Source of the DNA: Perkinsela sp. CCAP 1560/9 | Lineage: Eukaryota; Protista; Euglenozoa: Kinetoplastea | Assembly (NCBI GenBank): GCA_965644495.1 | Contig: CBFFSA010000002.1 | Coordinates: 992,001-1,056,000 of the forward strand | DNA length: 64,000 bases | Direction of reading: 5' to 3' | Shown: one piece after another, positions 7,865 to 61,704 of the stretch | How positions within the stretch are numbered: the first letter of the stretch is position 1 | How the letters are laid out: the number at the start of each line of letters is the position of its first letter | Notes under the pieces: model-generated | Seen by the model: only the letters and a program-made list of their open reading frames with translations | Told to the model about the DNA's origin: nothing | Database searches by the model: none | Program-made: the position numbers and the translations under genes

Positions 7865-7956
7865 GGGTGCAAAAAAGTGGAATAATAAATGGAAGTTGGA
7901 ATAATAAGTGGAAATTGGAATAATAAAAAAGTGGAATAATAACTGTACAGGGGGTT
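7865..7956. mobile_element. solo right end of the AACCCCCTGTACAG family
   Basis: AAAAAAGTGGAATAATAACTGTACAGGGGGTT|TA matches the right end of element 61061-61704. Confidence 0.75.
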
Positions 7957-10924: not shown

Positions 10925-12705
10925 TAATCGAATCATCTAAGAAATTTTTCTCGCAACTTGAGGTCTTCAAAGGTATATGCGATAAAGAGTTTGTATTCAA
11001 TTCTGACGAATTTTTTGTGTGTTTGGGATTAGGCAGATTTTGAAGCACGTGGTGCTCAGATGGCGAGTTCAAACCCGCTCATCGCAATATTCCCGGCGGC
11101 CTCACTCTGAGAGGCTGGGCTGATAACCGACTAGGCCCAGTACTCGGAGGACCGTCCCGGACACTCCCCTCAGGGAACCAGCTCCCTTACCCGGCTTACA
11201 CCTCTTGGGTGAGCCGTGTTGACGTACAATTCGTCGACGCAGCGTGTTGGCAACAGCACTTTGGTGCCGCCTTGGACAAGCGGAAACTGGTAGAGGACGT
11301 CGGCCTCGGAACCTCCAAATCTGTCTGTGGAGGGTCTGGCTTGCCAGTGACCATCCGGAGCAATCCGGAGTGATTTGGATTTTTTTTTTGGATTAGGCAG
11401 ATCGAACGCTACTTGGACATGGGAGCGCATTGATCGCGGAGAATCGCGTACAATATCTGTTCGTAAAGAAAAACAGGGATTCACTTGCAATGTTTTGTCA
11501 TCTGCGGCAGGAAATGTTAAGATGTTGCAATTCATTTACCAAGGAACAAGTCGTGTATTTGTAAACACAGGCAATGACCCACGCGTTCTTCAATGTGCCA
11601 GAAAAGAATCTCATTTCCAAGATTCTTCAACTTGGTCGACTTTTTTAGCGCGTTTTAAAGAAATACTTTCTTTGGAGCGTGAAGCGCAAAAGAAACCGGA
11701 AGCTCGGGCTCTTCTGATCATTGATGAAGCGACCCAGCATGGTAGTACAGATTCTATCCTTCAGGATGCGTCTTGTGGAGTAGTTTGCGTCCCGAAAAAT
11801 ATGACTCACGTATTTCGGCCAGCGGATCAGTTCATTATTTCTGGGTTAAAAGAGCGTGCTGTGCAACTTTATAACAGTGATATAGCCCGTATTTTTTCGC
11901 GCTCTGAGAACAGCACGGCAGTATCTAATATGGTAAGCACATCCCGCACTCTCTGTCGCGAAAAAAAGGTTTCCTATATCATCCAAGCAATGAATGAAAT
12001 TTCTCCTGCGCAAATTCTTGCCTCTTGGGAAGTTACAGAAAGATACCCAAGGTTTTGTTTGGTGAAGTAAAAACGCGCTCTTCTCGCCTTGATGCGTATA
12101 AAAACTTACAAACTCACTTAGGATCATCAGGGGACAACATATTCGTTGACGCGGATGATCAAGAGCAAACTCCATTGCCTATACCAAACGACGAGATAGC
12201 TACCTCCAATTTACCTAGTGAAAGAAGAAAACGCGGACGCCCTCGGAAAATACTATCGAGTGGGGACCTCGAAATGCAGCGACGCGAAGCCAAAGATATT
12301 GCCAATCTGCGCCACCGCCTACGCGGAATGACACGTAAGCGTAGAGAGCAATATAATTACGCCAAAGAATTGCACATTGCCCCATTGGCATCCTATGGAA
12401 TAGGGCCGCGCAATTGATCAAACTGGATTCGCTCAATATAGTCATGAAAGAAATGATGAGCAATGATTACTTCTTTATTGGTAAACTTTTGAATTTCCAG
12501 AGAGCTTTCATTAGTTATTTTGGGTTTTTTTACGCCGTGTTATGGACATACTGTAATGCTTTTTCTCCTCTCGAAATTTTTCTAGCTCTCTGGCATTTTT
12601 TGTTTCGCCATACAAATATTAGTGGGACAAAAATTAATGTTTTTTTAATTAATATTTGCATGGGTCCAACACTAATTAAAAAAACATTAAATTTTGGCGG
12701 CAGTG
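10925..12705 (+). mobile_element. degenerate pogo-like (DDE_1-type) transposon
   Basis: FNSDE motif at ~11000. ORF 11375-12070 has LLIIDEATQH and THVFRPADQ. The frameshifted tail 12025-12417 has an AT-hook RKRGRPRK. Right end is ...GGCGGCAGTG|TA, with a related end at ~52165. Confidence 0.75.
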
Positions 12706-44388: not shown

Positions 44389-45819
44389 GATATGCCATCA
44401 TACACGTTAACACAGAGCATAAGGGAACATAACGGACATTATTAAGTGCATGTTATGAGCTTGTACATGAATTTTCAGACTTTTCATCACCTGCGCAAGA
44501 CTGGAAAACAAACCGCTGTTTCGCGGTGTTTCGGAATAATAACCCGCAGCCCCTCAGGTAAAGTAGACCGAATTAAACCACTGTCCGGGTTAATATTCCT
44601 GGTAGGAATATTAAGAGGGTATAGGAATATAACGAGGTATAGGAATATAAAAAAATTAGCAGAAAAGGACCAAAAATTCTTTCGCGCCGCTTCGCGGCGC
44701 GATCTTTGCTCTTGTGCTCGTTCGAGTCTTGTGTGTGCTTGGAGCTTGATATTTTGATGAAAAAAACATAAACCACATACCCCATTTAACATACCCCCCG
44801 GTATGTTATCAAGGTATAGGTATGTTAAATAGACTGGTAATGAAATAGGAAAGAGAAGAAAATCACTTTCACAGTTAGACAACTGAAGGAATAAACCCGT
44901 TTAGGCACAATACTAATAATCCTTATGATGGTAATGATCGTTCCTACACGAAAATATTGGATTTAGCGCTCTCAGAGCAAAAGTACGCAAAAACGCCCCC
45001 ATTTTTACCTAAAAATAGGTGATTTTTGGTTCAAATCCTTCCCTTTTTTCGGCTTTCGTAACCAATTTTTCTTTTTTAGGCTCTTCGCAGGGCCTAAGTT
45101 TAGTTTTAGTTTCGCAGGGGTAGTTTTCAACGCGAAGCTCGCAGCATGAGTGACTTCTAAGTTGAAAACAACCACCGTGTTTACCGAAGAGCCTAAAAAA
45201 GAAAAATATTAAAAATGAACTAAAGTAAAACTACTAGAAATAGGAAAAAAAGTGGTTCTGTGTAAGTCTGTGTGAATTCGCGTAGATCCGTGTAGGTTCG
45301 TGTAGGTTTTTTTGGAACCCCAACCTAGCCCATCTGCAGACTCTCCACTGAGTTGTTGAATTTCCAACAAAAAACAGCAAAAGAAAAAAATACTATTTAA
45401 AGAGTGACAAGCGAAAAAATAGTGATATAGGAAAAAAATATCCACTAAAATCTTCACTCAAAAAACACTGCACTCAAAAAAGAACTTATTGGTCTTGTTT
45501 CGCAGATATACAAAATGAATTATCATCTCACCTATAGATTTCTGTAGTAGATTTTGGAAAATATTTTTTTACTTTTTTTTGAGTCAAATTGTTTTTTTGG
45601 CCATCCTAAAATTTTGGAAAATTTTGACCTTGTCGAACCCCTCCTGCGCGTACCAGGGGGTACCCCCAGGTGGGGGGTGGAAAATCATCGTCGCGGCCTA
45701 CTCTACCACTTCCCCGCGCTCGATTTGTTTTGAATTTTTTGAATTTTGTTTTCAGTTTTGGACCACCGGGGCCCCCTTTTAAACCACCGTCCGGGTTATT
45801 ATGCCTAGGAGGTATAATA

Positions 45820-46465
45820 CAGTGCACACAATTATTAGTGTAACATTAATTCGTAAAACAAAAAATAGTAAATTTTTAATTAGTAAAACATTTTACGAAA
45901 TTCAGGTTTTACACCTTACTTTCTTTTTTTCGGAATTCTATTTTTTTTACGAAAAGTTTTCAGATTACTATGTCGCACGACATCGGAGAAATGATATTGC
46001 TCAGCAAACTGATAAGTGCTTCGTCTAACATGACGCCCCCCAGAACTTCCTTAACAGATGAGCAAAAGAATTGGTTATTCGAACACACTCGTGGTGTTTT
46101 TCGGGGCGAAGATGTTCGACGAAAGTTTGAGCTGAAATTTCATCGAAGTCAATCCCTTTTTGGGGGATTTTCCTTGTAATACGCTTCACTGAAGCCTGAC
46201 ACACTCAGCATGATGAAGCATGGTCGGGACCTCCTCGCAGTCTGCCTTAGCATTACCATTTTGCAGATGGTACTAACGCCGACCTTAGAGGAGACAGCCC
46301 ACTCAAACGACAGAAATACCGTTTCTGTAAAAATTGATTTTATCAAGTTGGCAATTTTTTTGGGGGCAGTGCAAAAATTAGTAAAACAAAAATTAGTGAA
46401 TTTTTAATTAGTAAAACTTTTTTATTATTTTACAATAAAAGTTTTACTAAGTTTTGCGAGCACTG
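45820..46465 (+). mobile_element. internally deleted pogo-like element with a TA TSD
   Basis: CAGTG...CACTG ends; empty site GGTATAA-TA-AGTGT at ~20201. The ORF remnant RTSLTDEQKNWL is like a CENP-B/pogo N-terminal HTH. Confidence 0.85.
46215..46284 (+). ncRNA. HDV-like ribozyme candidate (partly degenerate)
   Basis: P1 GAAGCA/TGCCTT, P2 GGTCGG/CCGACC, L3 TCCTCGC, P4 TACCAT/ATGGTA and J4/2 CTAA; AG replaces GG. Confidence 0.65.
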
Positions 46466-46728
46466 TAAGTGTCCCTAGGTATAATAAGTATCCCTAGGTA
46501 TAATAACTTTGCTTTGCAAAAAGGGTAAAAAAAATTTCGCGCCGCTTCGCGGCGCGTTCTTTTTCGTATTGCGCACAACATGCGATGATCCATTTGCAAG
46601 TTTCACTATTGGACCCTCTGCAAGTCCGCCTTTTTAGAAGTTTCTATGGGTAACACTGGGTAGCACTGGTTGTACTGGGTAAAATATTTTACAAAAAAAT
46701 CTTTCTTAAATCAATAATTTTGAAATTA

Positions 46729-47078
46729 AACCCTGTTCCGGGCTATTTTACCTAGAGCTACTTATTGTGCAGGGGGGGGCACAATAAGTGGAAACGACCA
46801 CCGTTATTGTGCCCCCCCAACAAAATATGGCGCCGCGAAGCGGCGCCGCATTTTTTTGCGGGTTCTTTATTCCCATTTTCTCGAGATTAGCGGTGTTTGT
46901 TCAACAACGCACTCGTTAAATAGAACTAATTCTGCATATGAACATGTTTGTCCGTAAAAAAGGCGCCGCGAAGCGGCGCCAAATTCTTTTTACCCTTTTT
47001 TTGTTTTTTCCAATATTTAGTTATTGTGCCTAGAGCCAGTTATTGTGCAGGGGGGGCACAATAACCCGGAAGAGGGTT
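46729..47078. mobile_element. AACC-family MITE, TA TSD shown by an empty site
   Basis: GAAAT-TA|AACCCT...AGGGTT|TA-GTACTC vs empty GAAAT-TA-GTACTC at 63160-63172; contains two GAA hairpins. Confidence 0.9.
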
Positions 47079-47145
47079 TAGTACTCTTTGAGACTACGTT
47101 TCTGAATACAAAAGAGAAAATAATTTACCAAGCAAACTCTGTATT

Positions 47146-48159
47146 ATGATTTCCTCCTCTGTAGCTGTGTCTGGGCAAGATTCTCTTCCGCAGCTGTATT
47201 GTACGGAATGCGAAAAGAAAACGTTTTTTTTCGGTGTTGGCGCCTAGGCGCTGTCTCGTGTGTCAAGCACCAGAAGACGCAGCATCTACCATTGTGGATG
47301 TGGAGACATACCTGCGCTGTAGTTACAAAAACGTGCCCGTTACCGCCAACATATGTCCCGTAAGTACCGCTCCTAAAAATATTGAGGAGATATCTCGTGC
47401 ATTCAAGGAAACGCTGAGTGCCGTGGGTATCAATGTGGAAAGCGCACAACAGGTTTGCTGCACATACAGCAAATACTGGTTGTGCATGAAACAGCTGACT
47501 TCCGATGATGTCGCCCAAATTCTTTGGCAAGTAGCTACATGCAAAAAAATGGGGCCGCAAGATGCCTATATGCGTGCATCACGTTTCCTCGCGCTTTATC
47601 ATTTCAAGACAGCTCTTCATCCTGATGATGAGCGCCCCATGTCTCTCCTCATTAAGAACATGTAGCGAGCTCTGGATGAACAAGGAAAGTCTGCCTTATC
47701 GGCAGAGCGTGTAGAATTTGCGAGGGTCCTCCGAGAGAAGGTTCATCAGATAGACAAAAAAGTAAAGATTAAGATTCCATGTCTCGGTCGCGTCAAAGGC
47801 TTGGAACCTTTAGTACAATCACTCACTACATTCCACGGATCATCTCACAGGTCAAAGCTAAGGGACACTTAATTACGGGACACTTTTGACCAAAAAGGGG
47901 GTGTCCCTTAATTAAGGTGTCTCGTAATAAAGTTCCGCAATGTATGTCTCCACAAGAGACCCTAGACGTTCTCTTACGAAATGGTGCAGCTTTTATACCG
48001 GAATGTTATGTGATGAAGGTGAAACGAAGTAGCGGATCCCAAGCAGAGGTTGAAGTTTTGGAAGTGGATGATATTCCTGAAGAACGTACAAGCAAGCATG
48101 CAAAGATTGTTGCTAATACCAAGGTACGTGGTACGCTAGAATTAAGCCTACGTAAGTAG
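47146..48159 (+). pseudogene. disrupted Cys-rich accessory gene of the Harbinger-like element
   Basis: Near-identical to 63230-63720 (CTEC...CLVC); frameshift, stop codon and a MITE fragment are present. Confidence 0.6.
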
Positions 48160-48199
48160 GCTGGAGAATGCCAAGTGTAAGTAAGAAAGTAGGTAAATA

Positions 48200-49458
48200 C
48201 TGTGCCCCCCACTTATTTGTCACAGCTCCATCCCTCCCACTTATTTGTCCTTTTCGACGAAGCCTAGTTTTTTTTAATGGAGCATGACAGGCTAGTCGTT
48301 CTTCCTCATGTTATACTCTAATGTTTTACTTGACTGGTGAATAAGTCCGAACCATCAAAGTTAAATATCCGTTTGTATTTACTACTCTAAGTCTTTCACC
48401 CCATAACATAGTAGCTGAACACGTTTTTCAACAATTTTAGAACAACATTCTCCCAACGGTTCTCCCCCACAACTCTCCTCAACTATGCCTCATCCTACCG
48501 ACGGTTCTCCCCCACAAACCCCCTCAACCCTGCGGTGTCGTCCTCGTCGCCTTGAAGCTTGGGTGACCATACGCCCCCCTGCCCCACGAGTCGGCGCTCT
48601 CTCAAATTGTGTCAATATGACAAACGAAACCATCACTACATCAACTCTCGAAAATCGTCGTATCTAAGTATTCTGTGGTTTTACTTGGTGACTCGCAAAC
48701 CCTCGCTAGGTATTTCAAATTTACCAAACTAAATTTATCTCACGTCATATGATATGGAAACAATAATTTGCTTAGTGTTTTTTACCATATGCTTTAGTTT
48801 CTAGTTACACTGTTTCGGAAATGAATAAGAAGGCACTACGTCTCGTCTGAGTCAAATTAGTCAACAATACTTTACTGTAATTAGTAACAAGTTTGCGTCG
48901 ACAAGATTGTACTGCAAACGCATTTACACCCCGCATTCCATCCCTTATCACATCCCACATCCTCCTCGACCAGCAATTGCTCGACCAGAAATTTCTTAAC
49001 ATAACGTCACTTGTTACATACTCACTTGTATAGCGAGTACATACCTGCTGGAAGCGAGTACAGCGAGTACGGTACTCCGAGTAATTACTCGCTGTACTTA
49101 CTCCGGTGAGTGCACGAGTACCGTACTCGCTTCATGTATGATACTACTACCATAACCTTTTTTCTCTATCGCAGAGTTTTGACTCTCTATAGAGTTTTGA
49201 CTATTGCAAAATTAAAGTGGGCTTGCTTCTGGGCGCAACCCAAAATGGGGAAGTAAGGTCGGGACCTCCTCGTAGTCTTCCCTGGCACTGCTATCTTACT
49301 GATGGTACTAACGCTGACCGAAGAACATTCGTAAGAAGATATTTTTGAAGTATACACGAACTGTAACCCCCCCCCACTTAATTGTCATAGCTCCACCCCC
49401 CCTACTTATTTGTCCTTTTTTCGAAAAAGGGGTGACAAATAAGTGGAGGGGGGCACAG
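48200..49458. mobile_element. CTGTG-family element with TA flanks
   Basis: TA|CTGTGCCCCCCACTTATTTGTCAC ... GTGACAAATAAGTGGAGGGGGGCACAG|TA. Confidence 0.85.
49247..49319 (+). ncRNA. HDV-like self-cleaving ribozyme candidate (best-preserved copy)
   Basis: P1 GGGGAAG/CTTCCCT with G1.U wobble, P2 GGTCGG/CTGACC, L3 TCCTCGT, GG for P1.1, P4 TGCTATC/GATGGTA, candidate catalytic C49308 followed by TAA. Confidence 0.8.
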
Positions 49459-49601
49459 TACGTTCCTATTCTTGTAAGTGTGTAACTTACAATGATCTTT
49501 TGGGGGCGTGAGATCGATATATTAAGGTAGTATAAACTCCGAATTAATATTTTAAATTTTTTTGCCCAATATTTGCCATATTTCCTTTTTATAAATTTAA
49601 T

Positions 49602-50644
49602 TTGGTGCTTTACATGCCATCAAAGGAAAGCGAGCTCACGGACAACGGACTTACATTGGCCGTGTTCCAATATCTTGTTCAGGAATATGGACTCGAGCGA
49701 GAGGTTATCGATGCAGCTTTTAGTTGGCTCTGCAGTGGCGGACGATGGTCACTTGTGGCGAAACGCATGGACAAGAGAGGATGGAGTTTACGGTCATATC
49801 AGGATAAGATTCCCGCTTTTTTTAAACAAATGTTTGATTCTCTTTCTTCGGAATGGCTAACCAATCCTCCGGAAGAAATGATAAATGACAATAACAATAC
49901 TACATCTGGATTTTGGCCTGACGATGTTAAGATATGTATGGACACGGTACCTATTTCGGTTGATGCGCGCCCGCATTGCTACAATCCCAAATATGCGGAG
50001 CACGTTATAAAGGCTATGGTGGGATGCACCATGACAGGATACATATGTTTTTTGGGTAGGCAATTGTATACAGGAGCTTCTTCAGATTCAGTCATTCAAG
50101 ATTGTGGTATCTTGCACTTTCTACAAAATTGGAACGTGCTGATGGTGGGTTTTTCGAATGCAGAAGCGTGATAGTTCCGTTCAGCAAACATGAAATATGG
50201 CCACGAGATCTGTCCGATCATCCTTCCGAAATTGAATTAAAAAGAGCTGATGACAAACTTTCCTATAATGAATCACTCGTTCATTTTAGGGCTAGAATTG
50301 AGCATGTGTTTAGTCGTTCGTGTATGGGAAGGTGGCTTGCTTTCAAAAATTGGACCAAGCTATCGGACTCTCTTCTGTACTATTCTTTTGCATGTTGTGC
50401 GATAGTTCATGGATTTTTTTTTCGTCACAGTTGGTCCGGAAAGTATGCCTCTATGTCAGAAGATAAAAAGGAGGCCATTAAAAGAAAAATTGCTTTACAT
50501 AAAGCCCAATCTTCAAGATATCCCAAACCTGGCTGTCGCGCATCCCAAAAGAGGGGACGTAATAGCCCGCCAGAAAATAGACTTGTACAAACCCAGATTG
50601 AGGACTACATTGTCAATTTAGCCACGGATATCGATGAACGCTAA
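49602..50644 (+). pseudogene. frameshifted PIF/Harbinger-like DDE transposase
   Basis: ICMDTVPI, YNPKYAEHVIK and YTGASSD in one frame; ADGGF, VIVPF and YNESLVHFRARIEHVF in the next. The shift is near 50135. Confidence 0.85.
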
Positions 50645-50996
50645 ACCTTTTTCGTTTGATTGCTCACTTACACTTTTGACTATCTCAAAAAAGACCTATA
50701 CCGGTCCCACTATTTTCGACCGCCTGGCACCAACCTCCAGGTTGGCCACCCCCGCCATTGCAGAGGGGGTGGCCGGGGGGGTCACCACGAGTGACCTTGC
50801 AAAAGACTTCTGTGGGTAACACTGGGTAGCACAGGTTGCACTGGGTAACACAGAGCACACAAGATCACACTGGGTAACTGCAGAATCTCCATTGCGCCTG
50901 GGAAAACGTGCGCGAGTATGGGGGAGTTTATTTTCTGGGGCTTTCAGGGGTAAAAGAACATGAAATGACATGAATACATATATTTCGTGGTTACTA

Positions 50997-51614
50997 CAGT
51001 GATCGTCACCAATCTGAGAGCCACGAAAATGAGAATGACCCTCTCAAGAATGACAAATTATCGTGTCAACGTTCAACTCAAAAAGGGCCTTGAAAATGAG
51101 GATGAGAATGGATCAAAAGGGACCCTGTTGTGCAATCTGGGCAAAAATTTGTAAACCACAGTCCGGTTTATTATACCTAGGGACACCTATTGTACCCGCC
51201 GGAAGACCAAAATGAACACGACCGACACTCTCCTGAAATTAATGAGGCCGATGGACTCATGATGGTGTTCCTTGAGGCGTTTGATCGTGTCATAGAGCGT
51301 GCTCCACATGAGACAGCATTGCATGGAAATAATCCGAAACCTCGTACTCAACCCGTTGTTCAAAATAGAGTATGGCGAAATTTGCGTGCGAGACGACTTT
51401 GCTCGGGGTGTACCAGATTTGTGTTCGGTGGTGGCGAAGTATTGGCTGTGTTCTGCAAGGGGAGGATGCCGTAACCTGGATGAGATCACATGGCCTGTTT
51501 GAAAATGCCGCGTGAAAATGCCGCGAAAATGAGAATAGTCGCGAAAATGAGAATGAGAATAAAAAAATCCTGTCAATGTTCAATTACGGATTCTGAGAAT
51601 AGTGACGACCAATG
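50997..51614. mobile_element. pogo-like MITE with a TA TSD
   Basis: CAGTGATCGTCAC ... GTGACGACCAATG; empty site GGTTAC-TA-TACCC at ~20443; AAAATGAGAAT repeats. Confidence 0.82.
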
Positions 51615-51877
51615 TATACCCCAACAGGTCAAAATTCTTGACAATGTCAATCTGATTTCTTGGTAAGTTTTCCTCATCAAACGCAACATTGAAATTTACG
51701 CGCAGTGAGGGGAAAAAATTGTGTTGCTTCGTAGTCGACAACAAAGAGCATGCACCAGCATGCTTTTACGTGTCCAGGCGAAGAATTAACCCTTTCGGAG
51801 TGCTAGGGTTTAATTAACCCTTTCGGGGTGTTAATGTATATTAGGGCGATCGTTCGTAATTCCGTCTTTGTGGCATA

Positions 51878-52163
51878 CACCCCCGCAAAAAGTATTGTTC
51901 ACAAAAATGGTCGACACAAAAAGTATTGTATTTATTAGTATCGACCATTTTTTTGAGTTTTGACCTGAATTTTAGTTGTTGTTTTCGAATTTTCAGGAAA
52001 TTAGCATAATGAGTTCTGATGTACGCGGCCACTTGATCATCTCGAGGGAAGCTGAATGATTTCTCTCCTATTTTTATGCTTCACTATACGTTTACACAGA
52101 TCCGATATGATAATGTCCAGCGTTTTGGAGGCCAGTGGCAACTAGTGGAAGTCGACAAAAAGT
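51878..52163. mobile_element. truncated inverted copy of the CACCCCCGC element
   Basis: Reverse complement of 59645-59877 joined to 60775-60830. Confidence 0.8.
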
Positions 52164-52372
52164 ACACTGCCGACTAATATTATTGAGTTTTTAATTATTG
52201 GCGAAGCTCTGCAACTTTTAATTAAAAAACCAATAATGTTTGTGCCAATAATTTTCGTAGAAATTTGTACATATCGACAAACAATAGAAGTTGTTAGTAG
52301 AGGGGCCGAAAACCCCAAAATTAGGTCAAAATGGTTTTTTTTGCTCCCAAAAAGATTCAAGAATTTTTACGG

Positions 52373-52484
52373 GGAAGAAAGTTGCTTATCACCAAATAAT
52401 TATTATCCTTAGGAAGTACAAGTGTCCAAGGAAGAAAGTTGCTTATCACCAAATAATTATTATCCTTAGGAAGTACAAGTGTCC
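52373..52484. repeat. 57-bp-period tandem duplication
   Basis: GGAAGAAAGTTGCTTATCACC... starts at 52373 and 52430. Confidence 0.9.
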
Positions 52485-53412
52485 CTAGGTATAACCCGGA
52501 CGGTGGTTTGCATCTCTCTAATCTTGTCAAATGCGTTGCGAAGGGCAGGTTATTAAGTGGTCATTAAATGATGGGATGCGGGTGTGATCTCGCATGATCT
52601 CACGACCGGGTGTTGACATAAAGCCAATCTCGATCCTCCTGCGTCAAATCCTCTCACAAAATTTGAATTTTTGTGTAAAATCTATGGCACTCTTCTCTAA
52701 AACGTGGTTGCCAAGATCAGACCTCATGAGAAATTCAAAAATTGACCAAAAAAATATAAAAATGTTTCTCGCCAAAAATTGACAACTTTTAATTAAAAAA
52801 ACAAAATTTTTTGTGCCATGAATTTTAGCGATAATAATTTTTGGCTTGGGTGTATAATATACACCCAAAAATATAAAGTTTTATAGGTGTTTGGTACCGA
52901 GATGGATTTACTTATAAAAATATTTATATAAATTATGATCATTAGTTCTACTTTTTCTTATGCGCTTTCATGGGGTGTTTGTATGAATAGGTGACCGAAT
53001 TTGATATGTAAAGCCACATGCATTTGACCACATTGATGAATTTGATAAAAAAAGAGGACCGAAACAAAGAGCCGAAAAAGAAGTTTCTAAAACTATTAGA
53101 CTGCTTAATGTCTAAAAAAGAAAATTCCAAATATGCATTTGATACGCGAATCAGAATAAGAAATACGCGGCGCGCAGCGCCGCGAGCTCCGTTTTTTACC
53201 CTGCTCTTTTAGCGTTTTTCAGGCGTTTCAAAGTTTTATATAAATTTATATAAAACCATGAATCATTTTGGGCTCGAACTTATAAAGAATTATGAAAGGA
53301 GGAGTATTCAAAATAGAATTATAACAAAAGAAATCCCCAGTAAAAAAGCGCACCCCCGGTATGCCACGTACACTGGATCGGCGTAGAATGGATGTTACAC
53401 GCCAAAAACGAT

Positions 53413-55068
53413 TTATGAAGCAAAAGAATCCAAAATTCTTCTTACTTCACGAACTGTATCTGCAATGGCATGTACCACTTTCGTAGTAGTATCCCAATCC
53501 ATACATGCATCTGTAATACTAACACCCTCTTTCAGAAGATTGTCAGAGGGTTTCAACGACCAAAGATGATTTGTTGTGTCAGGGTAGTACTTAGAAATAA
53601 TTTTCTGAGGACATGTAAACAAAAAGGATTGCCTTCCGGATTTATGATACGACTCTAACATAAGACCAAGAAGAGGATACGTAGAAGTCGAAGTATTTGA
53701 TGTGGAACACGTAACTGAGTGTTCTAACATTTCTTGACAGACTTTCTCACAAACCCCAACCTGCTGTGTCCAGTCCCCACTCGAATTTCCGTGACTACAA
53801 TCTACCACTATGTCCCGTGTCAAATCTAGCACCGTTGGAGAAATACTCTCTCTTGTGTGCATTGCGGACTTTGAACATATCTGCAATTCCGAGAGTTTGC
53901 GATGAACCATCCAAATGGTGTCGTTATCAAAATTCGTTTGATTAAAGCGTCCAAGTTCTCTTGAGCTTCCTCCGACCATACTCTGAGTCTGTATACCAAA
54001 AGCATCCTCTTCAGATCCCACCCGCGCATTTCTTTCCCCTTGTTTTACATCCTCCACCTTCACTACCCCTTTATCCCCTGATCCATAACCCACCGAGGCC
54101 CCTCGCAAAACCACATGCGCATTTTCATTTCCCTCACTTCTCAGCACCCCCACCTTCCCCCCCTCCCCGGTACCGAAATACACCTGAGGGCAGCGCGCGA
54201 CCTGGACCCCCCCCACCGCCGCCTCCCACCGCCCATCCACGGTGTTCTTCAACCCCACCGGGAGCCCCAACCCACTCGCGAGCTCCCGATGGATTTGCGA
54301 CTCCGTACTTCGCGCCCCGATCGCGCCGTAGCTCATGAGGTCGGCAAAGTAGGGCGCGGTGAACGGGTCGACGAACTCCATCGCGAGCGGAAGCCCGAGA
54401 TCGAGCAGCCGCAGACACAGTTGCCGCGCCCCCACCAGCCCGGACCCCATCGCGCACCTCCCATCGAGCGAGGGGTCGGAGACGAACCCCTTCCACGCCA
54501 TCCCCCCGGTGCGGGGCTTGAAGAAGTAGCACCGCATCAGGAGAAGGAGCTCGGGGGCGAGTTGGGATCGAAGAGAGGCGAGTTGGGTGCCGTAGGTGAG
54601 GGCCTCGGGGAGGTTGTGAATGCTGCAGGGACCGAGGAGGAGGAGGAGGCGGTAGGGGGGAGGGGGAGGGAGGGGAGGGGAGGGGTTGGGTGGGGAAGGG
54701 TGAGGCCTGGGTAAAGTAGGGTCATGACGTTGTAGGCCATTGGTATGTTTTTGTAAAGTAGGGTCATGACTTTGTAAGCCATTGGTATGTTTTTGTAAAG
54801 TAGGGTCGTGACTTTGTAAGCCATTGTCATGACTTTGTAAAGCATTGCCATGTCTTTGTAAGCCATTGTCATGCTTTTGTAAATCATTGTCATGCCTTTG
54901 TAAATCATTGCCATGCCTTTGTAAATTGTTTTCATGCCTTTGTACACCATTTTCTCGCATCATGTGGTGAATTTCAGCTCGCGTGCGGAGGACAAGAGAG
55001 CGTTGGGCTTCGGAGAGGGGGTATGTCGCGCGAAAGGTTTCCGGGGAGGGGAGGGGAATGTGTTTCAT
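53413..55068 (-). CDS. class I (AroF/G/H-type) DAHP synthase with insertions
   Basis: GPCSIH, R.Y..KPRT, WKG..DP.LDG, AIGARSTESQIHRELASGL, PVGLKN, GN..AH.VLRG, DCSHGNS, GLMLES and SITDAC. Confidence 0.92.
   Translation of the reverse strand: MKHIPLPSPETFRATYPLSEAQRSLVLRTRAEIHHMMRENGVQRHENNLQRHGNDLQRHDNDLQKHDNGLQRHGNALQSHDNGLQSHDPTLQKHTNGLQSHDPTLQKHTNGLQRHDPTLPRPHPSPPNPSPPLPPPPPYRLLLLLGPCSIHNLPEALTYGTQLASLRSQLAPELLLLMRCYFFKPRTGGMAWKGFVSDPSLDGRCAMGSGLVGARQLCLRLLDLGLPLAMEFVDPFTAPYFADLMSYGAIGARSTESQIHRELASGLGLPVGLKNTVDGRWEAAVGGVQVARCPQVYFGTGEGGKVGVLRSEGNENAHVVLRGASVGYGSGDKGVVKVEDVKQGERNARVGSEEDAFGIQTQSMVGGSSRELGRFNQTNFDNDTIWMVHRKLSELQICSKSAMHTRESISPTVLDLTRDIVVDCSHGNSSGDWTQQVGVCEKVCQEMLEHSVTCSTSNTSTSTYPLLGLMLESYHKSGRQSFLFTCPQKIISKYYPDTTNHLWSLKPSDNLLKEGVSITDACMDWDTTTKVVHAIADTVREVRRILDSFAS
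54722..54950 (-). repeat. 21-bp coding repeat (~11 x HxNxLQx) in DAHP synthase
   Basis: Direct inspection. Confidence 0.9.
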
Positions 55069-55828
55069 GGGAAAGAATGATGTTCAAGTCATCAGGAGGT
55101 AAAAACCATGCGTTGTTGATGCGAGAAAACAAGATTTCGGGAAAATAGCACGTGGTATTATTAACGAGGGTATTACAAAGGGGGGATCCATGTATTATTC
55201 ACAAACATTTCGTCGGTTGTTGTGAATACCGTAGACTCCCCAGCATGGCACCCCCCATCAAAAGATTTAGCCCTTTTTGGGATGACCCCCAGTAAGAGAA
55301 ATTTGGCTCGGGAGCCCCACAGGAGGCGTATAGAGAGTAGGTGGTGGGTCCACACATCGGGGCCCTCGAGGGTAACCAAATATGCGTTTTAACGCGTTTT
55401 TAGAACAAATACAATATTAGTCGCTTCGTTAAACGCGGTGGTTGTTTTCAACTGAAGTGAAGTGAGAAGGCACCATTGCTGCGCGGTTCGCGTTGAAAAT
55501 TACGGTGAAAGGGAACCGCTTTCCGCTATTTTTTTTGAAAAAGAGTCATAATTATTTTAAAGAGTGTTTTTGAGTCATTTTGAGGCAAATACATCACTTT
55601 ATCTGATGCTTTTCCACTTTTTGGGCTACTTTGGACATGAATTGTCGGCAGTGTACTGATTTTTCTTGCACCGACAACTGGTCATACACAGTTTTGACAA
55701 CGGCAAGCGAAAGGTACATTATTCAATGACTAGAGAGAAGCATGGTCGTGAGAATCCAGAATTTAATGTAACATGGCAAACCGCGACGACTGAGCACGAC
55801 CCTCTTATTCACCTCGTTAAACTCAGTA

Positions 55829-56869
55829 AACGGGGGTCCGGTTTAGCACAGGTATGGCACAGGTATGGTAGCCGGTCACAGGTATGGTAACCCGGGGTGC
55901 GGATTAATATCCAAACACGGATTTGGATATTAAAGTGCTATTTGGATATTAAAGTGCAAAAAATTCTATTTGGATATTAAAGCGCAAGCATTTTAATATC
56001 CAAATGAAGTATGGCGGGGCTCCGGTTGGTGGGGAAGGTGCTGATTGGTAGAGCTGCGAAGGAGACGTAGTGTAAGATGCAGTGTTAGAATACACGTGGA
56101 AAATCACTTTTCTAGAACCTAGGCTAAAGTGGACATGCTCCCTAGGACTCCTTGCAGCTTCCCACGCGAGGAAGTCGTCGTCGCCGGCGGTATACAGGTA
56201 TATCAGGCTCCAAACTCTCAAAAAACGGTCTAGACTAGAAGATTGCTATGATCACCCTGGTGGGGAGGGGGTGGGGGAAGGGGGTTTATACGTCTTCGTA
56301 AACTGTTTTTTCGAAAACTCACCTGAAACGATATCTGGCATGAAGTCGGGCCACATATCGGGTGACAAATCTTCAGAATGGCGCTTCAAGCATTCGGATG
56401 CGACAGTTTCCATGGTGTGATTTTGAAGTAAAAAAACCTATTTGGATATTAAAGTTCTATTTGGATATTAAAGTGCTTATTTGGATATTAAAGTGCCTAT
56501 TTATATATTAAAGTGCCTATTTGGATTTTAAAGTGCTATTTGGATATTAAAGCGCATTTGGATATTAAACCGCACCACGGGTTGAGTTGTTTGGCTAAAT
56601 TTGTAAAAAAGTGATTACCAGGAAAATATGCTAATATTACCACTTGTAAAAGTCATAGAATTCAAAAAAAATGCGATAAATAGTAAAGAAAACAAACGAA
56701 TAATGCTCTGTAGGGTTATGATTTACGTGGGCCACCTCGAACAAGAAGTCGACATCACATGTTGTCTGCCTGAAAAACCAGGAGGGGGTATGCTATCGAC
56801 ACTGGGTCACGATACCATACCCCCTCGGTATGTTACCAGGTCACAGGTATGCTAAACCGGACCCCCGTC
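55829..56869. mobile_element. AAC-type TIR element with TA flanks
   Basis: TA|AACGGGGGTCCGGTTTAGCA ... TGCTAAACCGGACCCCCGTC|TA. Confidence 0.82.
55890..56582. mobile_element. ACC-type TIR element with TTTGGATATTAAAGTGC arrays
   Basis: ACCCGGGGTGCGGATTAATATCCAAA ... TTTGGATATTAAACCGCACCACGGGT. Confidence 0.8.
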
Positions 56870-57209
56870 TAGTAGTTTTCAAAGCGAATCGCGCAGCAGT
56901 GGTGTCTTCTAATTTGAGAAGAACCACCGAGTTTAACGAAGCGCCTAATATTATATTCGTTCTTATATTTGTTAAAACGCTTATTTCGGTTACCACCAAG
57001 GCCCCTGAATACTTTTGGTTAAGGCATTTATAGAAACTAATGAAGGGGGGAGTATTATTTTTACTTAATTCACGTCATTGCGCTACAAAGAACAGGAGAC
57101 CCTGGAGATAATTTTCCATCGTGACAAAGGGTCATTTGCAGACTCTCCATCGTTGAGAAAAAGCTTCTGTAAACATTTTAGTAAAATGGTTAGTATCTTG
57201 TTCTCTTGC

Positions 57210-58160
57210 CTACATTAACGCACAACTCGAGTCATCCTCGCCTACTCCTCGAAACCATGATGGTAGCTTTCCGGAGGGCAAATGGCCCTCAATCCGGTTT
57301 CCCTGCATAGACATCCCGGTGATCTGTGAGCCTACCGGAGGGGCCTCCCTCCACAAGGCGTGGGATTGAATCTCTCCCAGATCCGCCACCCCGGAAAAGT
57401 GATTATGTGATAAATCCAACGTGTGGAGAGCAGGCGGGAGGCGACGCAGCACAACGTGCCCCGTTAACCCGTTGTGGGAAAGACTCAGAGAGAGTAACGA
57501 CGGGGGGAGGGCTGTGAGGTCCACGTCCCCATCGAACGCATTATGGGAAAGGTCCAACAACGCTAATCGAGAAGGGAGGCACCGAAGTTCGAGATTTTCC
57601 GAAAAGCGGTTGTGGGGTAAGGAGAGACACTCAAGCACGGGGCTTAGTTCGTGGAGAGAGAGAGGACCGGAGAACTGGTTGTGACCTAGTTTTAACTCTC
57701 GAAGAGAAGATGGGAGAGCACTGAGGTCAAGGTTCCCGGACATTGCGTTGCTCATTGCACATAACACACGGAGAGATGAGGGGAGGGCGTGTAAGGGGAG
57801 AGTTCCGGTCAGGGCATCACAGTCGCTGATCTCGACGTACGTAATGGTACAGGGAAGAAACTCCCAGTTGAGAGGCCCGTATAAGTTAGAGGCTCGAGAA
57901 AACAGGTTGAGTTCTATAACGCGGCCCATCGAATCGCAAAATACACCTTCCCAATTGCATGGTGCACGCGACTCTATGGAAGAAGATTCGCTATTGCTTA
58001 GCGCCCAGCTCTGTGGACGAGTGGATAGACTGTCCGTAAAACGAAGTAGGAGCTCTTCGGGAGGAATAAGCACAGAGCGAGCCTTACCAAGACGAGAGGC
58101 AGAGGCGGATGTGTCGGAAAAGTACGCCGTATGGTGGAGGAAAAGGCAGAAAATGTTCAT
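57210..58160 (-). CDS. leucine-rich repeat protein
   Basis: GKARSVLIPPE, the PCNWEGVFC cap and LPSSL repeats. Confidence 0.88.
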   Translation of the reverse strand: MNIFCLFLHHTAYFSDTSASASRLGKARSVLIPPEELLLRFTDSLSTRPQSWALSNSESSSIESRAPCNWEGVFCDSMGRVIELNLFSRASNLYGPLNWEFLPCTITYVEISDCDALTGTLPLHALPSSLRVLCAMSNAMSGNLDLSALPSSLRELKLGHNQFSGPLSLHELSPVLECLSLPHNRFSENLELRCLPSRLALLDLSHNAFDGDVDLTALPPSLLSLSLSHNGLTGHVVLRRLPPALHTLDLSHNHFSGVADLGEIQSHALWREAPPVGSQITGMSMQGNRIEGHLPSGKLPSWFRGVGEDDSSCALM

Positions 58161-58494
58161 CTAGTGAGGAAATAATAAATTTTGAAAATTGACGGAATAC
58201 GGTGTTCCATGCTTGTAGAGAATATTGTTTCTTATTTACTTGTGCACAGAAATAACGCTTTCTGCGCATTTCTTTAGAATTGGAGATTATTTACAACTTC
58301 TGAAATTGTTTAACTTCGACATAGCCGTCCTTGTACTACACGTACATACGACGGACGCTCGTTAAATAATGGATTATGACGTTACAAACCCTGTATTTTA
58401 GGGAAGAGCGCACCAATTTTGTCGCAAAAGAATGAAAAACGCAGTGGGAATGCAAATACATGCGAAAAAAGACACATGTACCAGAAAAAGTCGT

Positions 58495-59340
58495 TCACTC
58501 GTTACGCACCGACGTTTCCTTTATAAGTGTGTTGTGAAACTCGAATTCGATAAGAGAAGGCATCAACGCCCCATCAAAGTTCCCGACAAGATCTTTGTTA
58601 TTTGAGACACTCAAGTCTATCAGCGTGTTCGATAATGAGTAAAAACCCGCTATGCTTTCCAGGCGATTCATGCTCAGATCAAGTGACACAAGAGATGAAG
58701 GAAGGTAACCTAAGTCTATATCACCCGAAAAAGCATTTTCTCTTAGGATGAGCTCTGTCACTGACTGTGGCAAGGAGGTCAGATTAAGTGACCCAAAAAG
58801 CCTATTTCTATCAACTGCAAACACGCTTATGCTTTTGGGAAGAGCACTCAAGTTCAGAGTACCATGGAAAGAGTTTGTCCACAAGTAGACTTCACTCAGA
58901 GTATCCGGCATACCCTCCACATCTAGTGGACCGCTGAGCATGTTTGATCCCAAATGCAGATGTGTAAGTTTATCAGGGAGGCAACTAAAAGGCACCTCAC
59001 CTGTCAAAAGATTTTTGTATATAATCAGACGAGTCACCGATTGAGGTAAATGTTTCCAATTTGGAGTTCCTTGAAGGAGACGTCGCTTCCACTCAATGTG
59101 TGTGACATCATAGGGCCTAGTTTTATTTTTACACCGAATTCCAGACCATTCGCAAGCCGGAATCTTTGTAGTCCAAGTAGAGTGGGTATCCTTTAAGCCC
59201 TCTAAAAATTGAGAGAGTTGAAATTCCGGAGGCAGGGATGCTCCCCGAACTTTTCCGCTACGAGTTCTGTAGCCTTCAGTAGCAGAACCAGGTGCATTTG
59301 CGTCACTTGAATGCGTTTGCCTAGTTTGGTTTTCGGACAT
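58495..59340 (-). CDS. leucine-rich repeat protein
   Basis: GKVRGASLPPEF, the WTTKIPACEWSGIRC cap and LRRs. Confidence 0.88.
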   Translation of the reverse strand: MSENQTRQTHSSDANAPGSATEGYRTRSGKVRGASLPPEFQLSQFLEGLKDTHSTWTTKIPACEWSGIRCKNKTRPYDVTHIEWKRRLLQGTPNWKHLPQSVTRLIIYKNLLTGEVPFSCLPDKLTHLHLGSNMLSGPLDVEGMPDTLSEVYLWTNSFHGTLNLSALPKSISVFAVDRNRLFGSLNLTSLPQSVTELILRENAFSGDIDLGYLPSSLVSLDLSMNRLESIAGFYSLSNTLIDLSVSNNKDLVGNFDGALMPSLIEFEFHNTLIKETSVRNE

Positions 59341-59571
59341 GTGCTATGAAATAGATTTTGAAGCAGATATTGTGCGAGTACCGTAACAATCGTAAAAAGG
59401 GGCGTCTTCTCATGTCAAACGATACACGAAAAAATGCTAAACCACCGTCCAGGTTATTACTCCCCCTCCGATTAAATTTGATAATGATAACTGATAAATC
59501 GGTTAAAGTAAAGGAAAATTCGCCTTTTTTGAAAAAAGTGGTACGTCGGTAGAGCAAATCAAGAATGCTTA

Positions 59572-60830
59572 CACCCCCGCTAAAAAAGTTTTGTAATTTA
59601 TTAGTATCGACCTCGAATTTTTGGTCGATACTAATAAATACAATACTTTTTGTCGATTTCCACGAGTTGCCACTGGCCTCCAAAAAGTTGGACATTATCA
59701 TATCGGACCTGTGTAAACGTATAGTGAAGCATAAAAATAGGAGAGAAATCATTCAGCTTCCCTCGAGATGATCAAGTGGCCGCGTACATCAGAACTCATT
59801 ATGCTAATTTCCTGTAATTTCGAAAAAGAAACAACTAAAATTCAGGTCAAAACTCAAAAAAATGGTCGATACTAATACTGTGCCCCCCCCCCACGTACAG
59901 CATGTATAGTGCCGCTGTTTTCGACCAAACGGCATTATAAGTGGGGGGGAGTAGTATGTTTCAGGTCGAGAGTGAAAAAATTTCCACCCACAAAAAAAAA
60001 AGCGCGCCGCTTCGCGGCGCAATTCTTTCTATCATGTGTTACCATTAATTTCTTGGAGCAATTTAAGGTGCACTTTCCATAAAATTGCCTTTCGCTCTTT
60101 GTTAAAGCTTCTCTGGCGCTTTCTTCCTTTGAGACCGCGATTGATGCATGATCGATAAATTGTATCGAGCGGTGCCTCTTTTTATTAAAAAGAGGCACCG
60201 TTGCTTCGGACAGTTCCTAAATTGATCCGATACGTTTCGCTCAGCCGTTTTGTTTCCAATTCGCTTAGACACACATTCAACTTATCTTGCATAGTCAAGC
60301 ACACTCTAGAGGTCCTAGGTGTGCTGATGGGAAGAGAATCAAATGTGTTGGGGGGAGGACGGGTGGCCAACAGGGACCTATTCTCGGCACTGGTGGAATA
60401 ACCGTAAACCAGCGTTCCAAGGACCTGAAATCGCCGATCCACAAGAGTGCGCTTTGTCTGGCGCCTCGTTTTCGTGAGAATCAACAGTCATTAAATGGAT
60501 GAAGGGAACTACGCCGCGTACACTATACGCAGTCCAATGCCCTGCATGGAAGGGCCACGAGTGTGCGCTTTGTCCGGCGCCTCATTTTCGTGAGAACCAG
60601 CAGTCACTAAATGGATGAAGGGAACTAATAATAATGTCTCAATGATTTCCACAAATGAAAATATTAGAAATTTACACCAGATTTACTCTACCTTTTTGGT
60701 CAAAAAAAATTGGTCGATTTTTTTCGGGCATTTTTTTTCAAAACGGTACTATAAGTGGGGGGGGGGGCACAGTAAATACAATACTTTTTGTGTCGACCAT
60801 TTTTGTGAACAATACTTTTTGGCGGGGGTG
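59572..60830. mobile_element. CACCCCCGC-TIR element with TA flanks
   Basis: TA|CACCCCCGCTAAAAAAG ... CTTTTTGGCGGGGGTG|TA. Confidence 0.82.
59878..60772. mobile_element. CTGTG-family element, TA TSD shown by an empty site
   Basis: GATACTAA-TA|CTGTG...CACAG|TA-AATACAAT vs the empty inverted site at ~51926-51943. Confidence 0.88.
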
Positions 60831-61060
60831 TATATTGTTTTCGTAAGTAAAAAATCGTCACGATTTTGCACTTTTATTACTTACTCGACTTTCTTTCTTG
60901 GACTCTTAGATATGAACACAATCACAAAAGTCATTCCCATTCCCGACGGAGACAATGGTGGGCTTAGTGGAGTCATAAGGAAATAAAGAGCTTAATTTTT
61001 ACAGAACATACAGTGTATGCAGTACTGAGTTATACAATGAGATGGTACAAGTGGTATGTA

Positions 61061-61704
61061 AACCCCCTGTACAGTTATTATTCCACTTTTTTTAGTGGAA
61101 TAGTTTTAGTAGTTTTCGGTCGGCATGGGTACCATCAACAACAAGGAAGTGCCAGGGAAGACAGCGTGGAGGTCCCAACCTTGATTCCCCAGTTTGAGGG
61201 TGTCAAAAACTTTCTACGAAAATTGCATTTACAGAAACGGTTCCTGTATCGTTTGAGTAGTTTTCCACTCTTCTCTGCCAGTATACGCAGCGATTATGAC
61301 AAGAGCACATTATAAATTTGCTCTTCTACTCAAGATAGTTCGACGATACGTTATAAAAGTCGAAAGAGGCCAAGATCATATTGTTACTATTTTCCTCTTC
61401 AAATTCTTCGTCTTCTTTCTTTTGTTCTCCATGCACCCGTTGTGCGGAACAGTTTCAATATCAACACCCTTTTCACTTGAACAAGAACATTCGACGTCAT
61501 CGTCACTCAATTCAACTATTCCCATTCCGTGTCCTCGACGTTCGCCTCGACAACCTCCGAAGCATAAATAGAGAAAATTCTTCGAATATCCAAGGACAGC
61601 GTTGAGTGGGGACTCCATTTTGAATGTTGGAATAATAAAAAAAGTGGGATAATAAGTGGAAATTGGAATACTAAAAAAGTGGAATAATAACTGTACAGGG
61701 GGTT
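61061..61704. mobile_element. AACC-family element with perfect ~32-bp TIRs and TA flanks
   Basis: AACCCCCTGTACAGTTATTATTCCACTTTTTT at both ends. Confidence 0.92.
61118..61190 (-). ncRNA. HDV-like ribozyme candidate (degenerate P4 and J4/2)
   Basis: Reverse complement reads GGGGAA TCAA GGTTGG GAC CTCCACGCT GTC TTCCCT GG CAC ... GATGGTA CCCA TGCCGACC. Confidence 0.6.

Follow-up and report, generated by a model that had tools for sequence, protein, structure and literature searches.

Self-cleaving ribozymes of eukaryotic mobile DNA occur in elements that spread via RNA, such as R2, L1Tc, Penelope-like elements and retrozymes, in which cutting of the transcript is part of the life cycle. In bacteria, IStrons combine a group I intron with an IS200/IS605 transposon; they splice out and rejoin the host RNA. 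The trypanosomatid retroposons L1Tc, NARTc, ingi and SIDER carry an HDV-like (hepatitis delta virus-like) ribozyme designated as L1TcRz or the Pr77 hallmark, which frees the RNA of the element from co-transcripts (PMC8190864). HDV-like ribozymes are also present at the 5' ends of R2 and other retrotransposons without long terminal repeats (PMC3774820, PMC3414825), and retrozymes and tandem hammerhead repeats are small non-autonomous units with self-cleaving ribozymes that give unit-length RNAs able to circularise (PMC4918200; bioRxiv 10.64898/2026.07.22.740005). DNA transposons of kinetoplastids were first reported in 2021, and only of the Merlin type (PMC8101967). Here we describe a stretch of 64,000 nucleotides (nt) from the kinetoplastid Perkinsela sp. 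CCAP 1560/9 (contig CBFFSA010000002.1, positions 992,001 to 1,056,000; hereafter the window), in which three HDV-like ribozyme motifs lie inside DNA elements with terminal inverted repeats (TIRs). This observation, first made in a preliminary description of the window, was confirmed. A literature search gave no report linking HDV-like ribozymes to TIR elements; in the papers covered, HDV-like ribozymes were described only in retroelements and hammerheads in retrozymes. The finding is thus a known ribozyme class in a new carrier type, and it raises the question of what RNA cleavage gives to a cut-and-paste element, since a DNA transposon needs no RNA intermediate.

The motif resembles L1TcRz/Pr77 in being an HDV-like ribozyme of a kinetoplastid mobile element, a likeness judged by architecture, and one retroposed family of the genome (family G, described below) has the same build, with the ribozyme at its first base. 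However, L1TcRz/Pr77 forms the first 77 nt of the retroposon, whereas most copies of the motif described here lie within TIR DNA elements, behind a transposase frame and close to the 3' end. The R2 ribozyme belongs to the same fold class and is also associated with self-cleavage of read-through co-transcripts, but it is a 5' processing device of an element copied through RNA; the carriers here move as DNA, with no RNA intermediate needed. Dimers and permuted modules in this genome resemble the tandem self-cleaving units of retrozymes. Retrozymes use hammerheads and are mobilised by retroelements, whereas the type here is HDV and sits in TIR elements. IStrons are likewise DNA transposons with a catalytic RNA acting on run-through transcripts, but they splice, while the HDV-like ribozyme here would only cut. 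The ribozyme of hepatitis delta virus itself (RF00094) has the same helix order and an almost identical loop L3 (UCCUCGY); it differs in helix P4 and in the joining segment J1/2, and the motif here is genomic, not viral.

HDV-like ribozymes in the window and the genome

The three ribozyme copies of the window are homologous, with approximately 75–80% identity across ~90 nt.

46212-46284 (+): ribozyme copy 1, in a family H element; degraded, with 5 of 7 pairs in P1, 2 of 3 in P3 and 1 of 2 in P1.1
49247-49319 (+): ribozyme copy 2, in a family A element; a P3 mismatch at 49274 is the only helix defect; C49308 follows P4
61118-61190 (-): ribozyme copy 3, in the third element; degraded, with 6 of 7 pairs in P1, 2 of 3 in P3 and 4 of 7 in P4; P2, P1.1 and the C after P4 are retained

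Position 49274 is A in copy 2 and G in most other copies. Copy 2 is nearly intact, and copies 1 and 3 are degraded. The preliminary description regarded the three as homologous segments of ~70 nt that fold as the HDV nested double pseudoknot. This is borne out by their identity, by the fit of the helices and by a covariance model, although the start of copy 1 had been placed at 46215 and is corrected to 46212. The model was built from an alignment of 32 copies, the three window copies and 29 others of the genome; it scored the window segments at 106, 80 and 76 bits and matched nothing else in the window.

The helices follow the order P1-P2-P3-P3'-P1'-P1.1-P4-P4'-P2' of the HDV-like nested double pseudoknot, with 25 pairs in five helices. 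P1 (GGGGAAG/CUUCCCU) has 7 base pairs (bp) with a G.U at the cut site, P2 (GGUCGG/CYGACC) has 6 bp, and P3 (ACC/GGU) has 3 bp and closes L3, whose sequence UCCUCGU is the same as in HDV. P1.1 consists of two pairs (CC/GG), only one of which is retained in families E and H. P4 has 7 bp and is directly followed by C and then N-R-A. Standard pairs occupy 95% of the pair cells of the 32 copies, compared with 26–53% once the 3' partners have been shifted over one to three columns. The hallmarks of HDV-like ribozymes are present: a G.U at the base of P1 (26 of 28 distinct rows), a short P3 of 3 bp with a C-rich L3 that supplies P1.1, and the putative catalytic C after P4 (59 of 65 copies). The A three positions past this C is invariant in the 32-copy alignment. 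Approximately nine in ten independent stem changes among intact family representatives preserve pairing (G-C to G.U, G.U to A-U, and one full switch of C-G to U-A in P4), and variation is found mostly in J1/2, L4 and J4/2. Within families A, D and E the core diverges less than the flanks; in family H the difference is marginal.

In a search of Rfam with an intact copy of 106 nt, HDV_ribozyme (RF00094) ranked at the top of 4227 families with 20.5 bits (E 0.25; gathering score 50), in the same register as the helix assignment given here. Listed besides was drz-agam-1 (RF01787), with 12.7 bits against a gathering score of 37; no other ribozyme family appeared for the 106 nt. The Rfam models are narrow and lack the pseudoknot. 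Minimum-free-energy folding of single copies gave z-scores near zero, as expected of a method that cannot draw a pseudoknot. The lack of an Rfam match at the gathering score, together with an identification made from sequence, would suit the idea that the conserved 73 nt are not a ribozyme and represent a DNA-level signal or a chance resemblance. We consider this extremely improbable: the five helices, the L3 sequence, the cut-site G.U and the C after P4 are all in place, stem changes preserve pairing, and retroposed copies (see below) begin at the predicted cut site. Chance resemblance was rejected on the same grounds, and the segments very probably represent a family of HDV-like ribozymes.

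As the preliminary description had proposed, the genome was scanned with the covariance model and the matches were mapped relative to TIRs and transposases. With 150 candidates scored, the 21-Mb assembly gave at least 137 matches with an E of 0.01 or below, and 65 distinct copies were inspected with their flanks. Intact examples are the family A copy at C15:175450 and copies of families B, D and G. The genome therefore holds more than 100 natural ribozyme variants for cleavage assays. A metagenome scan with a 19-base core pattern returned 49 contigs, none of which was recognised by the covariance model; for this reason they are taken as chance matches. Twelve head-to-tail units of 1692 bp lie at G000:C2:619576-638259 (~355–373 kb before the window), and each contains a weak ribozyme match (40.6 bits) overlapping a stretch that is 25% identical to the N-terminal part of a pogo transposase.

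Carrier elements and transposase frames

Each window copy is located inside a TIR element.

45820-46465 (+): family H, non-autonomous pogo-like element of 646 bp; ends CAGTGC...GCACTG; TA on both sides
48200-49458 (+): family A, non-autonomous element of 1259 bp; ends CTGTGCCCC...GGGGCACAG; subterminal repeats; TA on both sides
61061-61704 (-): third element, 644 bp; near-perfect TIR of 34–36 bp (AACCCCCTGTACAG...); TA on both sides

The ribozymes end 181, 139 and 57 nt from the nearer terminus; these distances and the element ends agree with the preliminary description, and the TA flanks were confirmed. Family A has two other full copies in the genome as well as deletion derivatives. The third element is the sole full copy of its kind, its relatives being end fragments. 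One of these, a solo right-end fragment with GTGGAATAATAA subterminal repeats, lies in the window at 7878-7956.

Genome-wide, at least ten families with differing TIRs and TA flanks carry the ribozyme, in accordance with the earlier claim that the motifs lie in elements with unrelated ends. Their ends or types are as follows.

Family A: left end CTGTGCCCC; window 48200-49458
Family D: left end CTGTCCCCC; related to A
Family E and its relative L014: left end CTCCCTCTCTC
Family H: left end CAGTGC; window 45820-46465
Third window element: left end AACCCCCTGTACAG; window 61061-61704
Family C: left end CCGTCACCC
Family F: left end ACCCGGGG
Family B: 91-bp repeats as ends
Family J: autonomous; two identical copies

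The TIRs and TA flanks of Tc1/mariner/pogo (ITm) transposons were found in the three window elements and in families C, D, E, F and H. Between families, similarity is limited to positions of about -90 to +75 around G1, the first base of the ribozyme, and the flanks beyond cannot be aligned. Within families, identity is 92–100%, and the alignment extends over whole elements up to inverted-repeat ends with TA on either side. The ribozyme points to the nearer terminus in all three window elements, as first noted, and in 10 of 10 families.

In each carrier family the module occupies one fixed internal position in every copy, and it was therefore present before the carrier multiplied. If each segment were instead a separate insertion of a short interspersed nuclear element (SINE) into an unrelated TIR element, it should have its own target duplication and tail. 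Neither a poly-A nor a target duplication was found beside the module in the three window elements and the other families, a point on which the preliminary description had staked its interpretation. Although a SINE-like form of the same ribozyme does exist in this genome, the missing tails and duplications and the fixed position in all copies of each family make nested SINEs very improbable, and this reading was rejected because tails and target duplications are absent around the module. The module is very probably an integral part of its carriers.

Sites without the elements were also observed. DNA contigs from three runs join 45817 to 46466, skipping the family H element and one TA, and a DNA contig from run X2 joins 48195 to 49457 without the 1259-bp element. 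The latter joint is one letter off a clean single-TA site; excision with a footprint, variation between strains and paralogy of the site are candidate explanations. The element-free joints need not be allelic, since they may come from paralogous copies of a host repeat.

DDE_1 transposase domains, as expected of autonomous members, were found in family J, in family B and in frames of 668 and 714 amino acids (aa) in family H. In family J, 41 nt separate the open frame (691/707 aa) from the ribozyme downstream of it, and a further 45 nt separate the ribozyme from the end of the element. In family B the DDE_1 frame lies upstream of the ribozyme on the same strand, and in a long variant of family E the ribozyme comes 183 nt after what is present of a J-like transposase, its C-terminal third. 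With a further lineage on contig C3 (C3:106161), a ribozyme behind a DDE_1 transposase frame is thus seen in four lineages (J, B, E and C3:106161). Among the matches listed, 6 of 59 DDE_1 matches in the genome have a ribozyme match within 1.2 kb, and all six of these ribozymes, from three lineages (B, J and C3:106161), are downstream of the transposase and co-oriented with it. With 6 of 59, the notion that the module is a regular part of TIR DNA transposons is not upheld; the module is frequent and consistently placed, yet neither universal nor required for transposition.

The family H element of the window was said to carry its ribozyme downstream of, and co-oriented with, a transposase-like remnant, which proved to be the following frame.

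45970-46179 (+): 69-codon frame; its first 62 residues are 85–90% identical to the N-termini of DDE_1 frames; preceded by a pyrimidine tract and AG

A Pfam search of the 69-codon frame gave no match. The label of remnant is nevertheless correct, since the 62 residues match the starts of DDE_1 frames, and the pogo-like assignment of 45820-46465 holds as well. The related full frames are those of 668 and 714 aa, at C2:877017 and C15:170043. These autonomous H elements match just the last 129 nt of the short element, and ~80 nt separate the end of the frame from the 129-nt piece, so that they lack the module. Neither family A nor the third window element could be paired with an autonomous element, and an 80-codon frame in the latter gave only weak matches to short frames and no link to a transposase. 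Elsewhere in the window, a fragment of a DDE_1 (pogo-type) transposase is present at 11636-12028 (+) in an open frame of 231 aa, on the strand opposite the neighbouring genes. Together these elements document a rich pogo/Tc1-like repertoire in a kinetoplastid-type genome.

Leaders, permutation and other forms of the module

The conserved unit consists of the 73-nt ribozyme and a structured leader of 20–100 nt. In the window, the leaders and a related block are found at these positions.

46166-46211 (+): leader of copy 1; common to family H copies; two hairpins, GCUUC/GAAGC and CUGA/UCAG
49227-49246 (+): leader of copy 2; short; hairpin UGGG/CCCA
61191-61290 (-): leader of copy 3; ~100 nt; common to families B, C and L074/L075
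46285-46335 (+): block directly after copy 1; homologue of the leader block that lies far upstream in copy 3 and family B

A leader hairpin ends 3–4 nt before G1 and covaries between families (CUGA/UCAG, UUGA/UCAA, UGGG/CCCA, UUGG/CCGA). A second hairpin lies at about -35 to -20, and the long form of the leader contains a third block. In family H the ribozyme is followed by a block whose homologue lies 95–50 nt upstream of the ribozyme in family B, L075 and the third element, so that the families differ by a circular permutation of the module. About 430 nt at the ribozyme (-348 to +78, 80% identity; L010, L012, L013, L019) are common to families B and C, which look chimeric because this internal segment is shared and the terminal repeats are unrelated. 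The earlier suggestion that the module is exchanged between families gains support from this sharing of the inside but not the ends, from the permutation and from the autonomous H elements without the module.

Contig C9 contains ribozyme dimers, joined head to tail at periods of 109 and 134 nt, at L083:1980-2190 and L083:4373-4580 (the same in L084; G000:C9). Their second units are partly deleted, and the 5.6-kb dimer region of C9 is duplicated 55 kb away. Such dimers and the permutation would fit a retrozyme-like unit whose RNA is bounded by two cut sites.

On contig C20, family G comprises two SINE-like units, each composed of the ribozyme, a 100-nt tail and poly-A. They start exactly at G1, immediately after a poly-A run, and their G/A-rich tail of ~100 nt is common to the 3' end of a neighbouring sequence resembling a long interspersed nuclear element (LINE). 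The units (L023:1180-1800, L048:1180-1800; G000:C20:148.3-150.6 kb) are stacked with 5'-truncated LINE-like tails. The boundary at G1 fits self-cleavage before reverse transcription and would be the sole, indirect hint of cleavage in vivo. A ribozyme at the 5' end of a retroposon, as in L1Tc and NARTc, is found only in this family; the window copies lack a tail and lie inside TIR elements.

These forms bear on the strongest rival explanation, passive capture, which we regard as possible rather than probable. Here an RNA-mobile, retrozyme- or SINE-like unit of ribozyme and spacer, which would cleave itself, perhaps form circles and return to DNA by copying, would have been taken up as gap-repair filler or by insertion; it would be useless to the DNA transposon, and its conservation would reflect recent capture from an active source. 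The circular permutation, the dimers of 109 and 134 nt and the SINE-like unit running from G1 to poly-A all favour it, as do the module in at least 12 H derivatives and not in autonomous H, the single-copy state of the third window element with relatives reduced to end fragments, and the degraded J ribozyme. Random capture, however, predicts neither the orientation to the nearer end in 10 of 10 families nor the six of six downstream, co-oriented placements at DDE_1 frames among the matches listed. In addition, the modules in carriers lack their own poly-A or target duplication, and the copies found are mostly inside TIR elements and not free-standing.

A bolder proposal combines both routes. 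The ribozyme and its spacer would form the HDV-type counterpart of a retrozyme, an RNA of 110–175 nt that excises itself from multimeric or read-through transcripts, circularises, is copied into DNA, colonises cut-and-paste transposons as vehicles and so spreads by RNA and DNA routes; in pogo-like hosts it would also provide a hairpin-capped, poly-A-independent 3' end for the transposase message of an organism that uses trans-splicing. We consider this unlikely.

Possible function and relation to host genes

The explanation that we favour treats the modules as built-in parts of TIR elements of the Tc1/mariner/pogo type, which duplicate TA and carry the modules along as DNA. Their most likely origin would be the 3' untranslated region of pogo-like transposase genes, from which they may have been inherited by deletion derivatives and, by capture, have entered derivatives of other families. 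Transcription of the elements would be mostly read-through of long same-strand gene arrays, and the RNA is expected to cut itself immediately 5' of G1, a catalytic activity that we infer from the motif and its fit to the HDV fold. The upstream product would retain the left end, any transposase frame and the leader hairpins, and would terminate in a 2',3'-cyclic phosphate; the ribozyme, the right inverted repeat and any host RNA beyond would be severed from it. A transposase gene might thereby gain a message end independent of the insertion site, which would be useful because 3'-end formation there depends on the trans-splicing signal of the next gene. Any TIR element might gain by keeping its two inverted repeats off one RNA. 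Message ends free of host signals and avoidance of inverted-repeat hairpin RNA are thus candidate answers to what cleavage gives a cut-and-paste element; a third is that the module is itself a parasite, carried by another.

We assign a probability of about 0.5 to the whole chain, namely that HDV-like modules are built in, move as DNA, cleave themselves and benefit the element. Any specific benefit to the element, taken separately, is doubtful. Several observations weigh against the favoured explanation. Only 20 of 65 copies count as strictly intact, or 32 when one P1.1 pair is taken as sufficient. With 80–100% identity among the copies, formal covariation is weak. No Rfam family was matched at the gathering score, and searches of the whole window and of 17.5 kb at E up to 10 listed no ribozyme. 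Among the matches listed, 53 of 59 DDE_1 matches have no nearby ribozyme, a count that is uncertain. The two J copies, identical over 2 kb, have a degraded ribozyme, and autonomous family H elements lack the module that at least 12 short H elements possess. A role in 3'-end formation cannot explain retention of the motif in the short derivatives, since these encode nothing. Finally, the genes around the window copies all lie on the minus strand, so that two of these three copies run antisense to them; by a rough tally across 23 loci, 14 copies are sense and 9 antisense.

The orientation of the copies also bears on a role at the host level, in which short ribozyme-bearing elements in untranslated regions would set the stability or processing of mRNA in a SIDER2-like manner, in a genome without gene-by-gene control of transcription. 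Many copies are located in intergenic stretches of same-strand gene arrays, the core diverges less than the flanks within families, and a precedent exists in SIDER2 of Leishmania, whose hallmark is related to the L1Tc ribozyme (PMC5509151, PMC8190864). However, copies occur in both orientations relative to genes, many are decayed, and the within-family identity of 92–100% indicates young insertions and not old conserved sites. A host role is thus possible but unsupported, and in our estimation quite improbable.

In those checked, open frames near ribozyme loci that begin with RRGKV..A.LPQE (L026:15-935, L075:2-868, L069:2558-3451, L076:2836-3669 and others) encode proteins with leucine-rich (LRR)/FNIP repeats. 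The shared beginning suggests a multicopy gene family with a conserved leader. The 45–53 kb stretch of the window, in which the first two ribozyme elements lie, is a repeat-rich gap among minus-strand genes. Between these two elements, at 46518-47000, short nested repeats are clustered on the GC-rich palindrome GGCGCCGCGAAGCGGCGCC.

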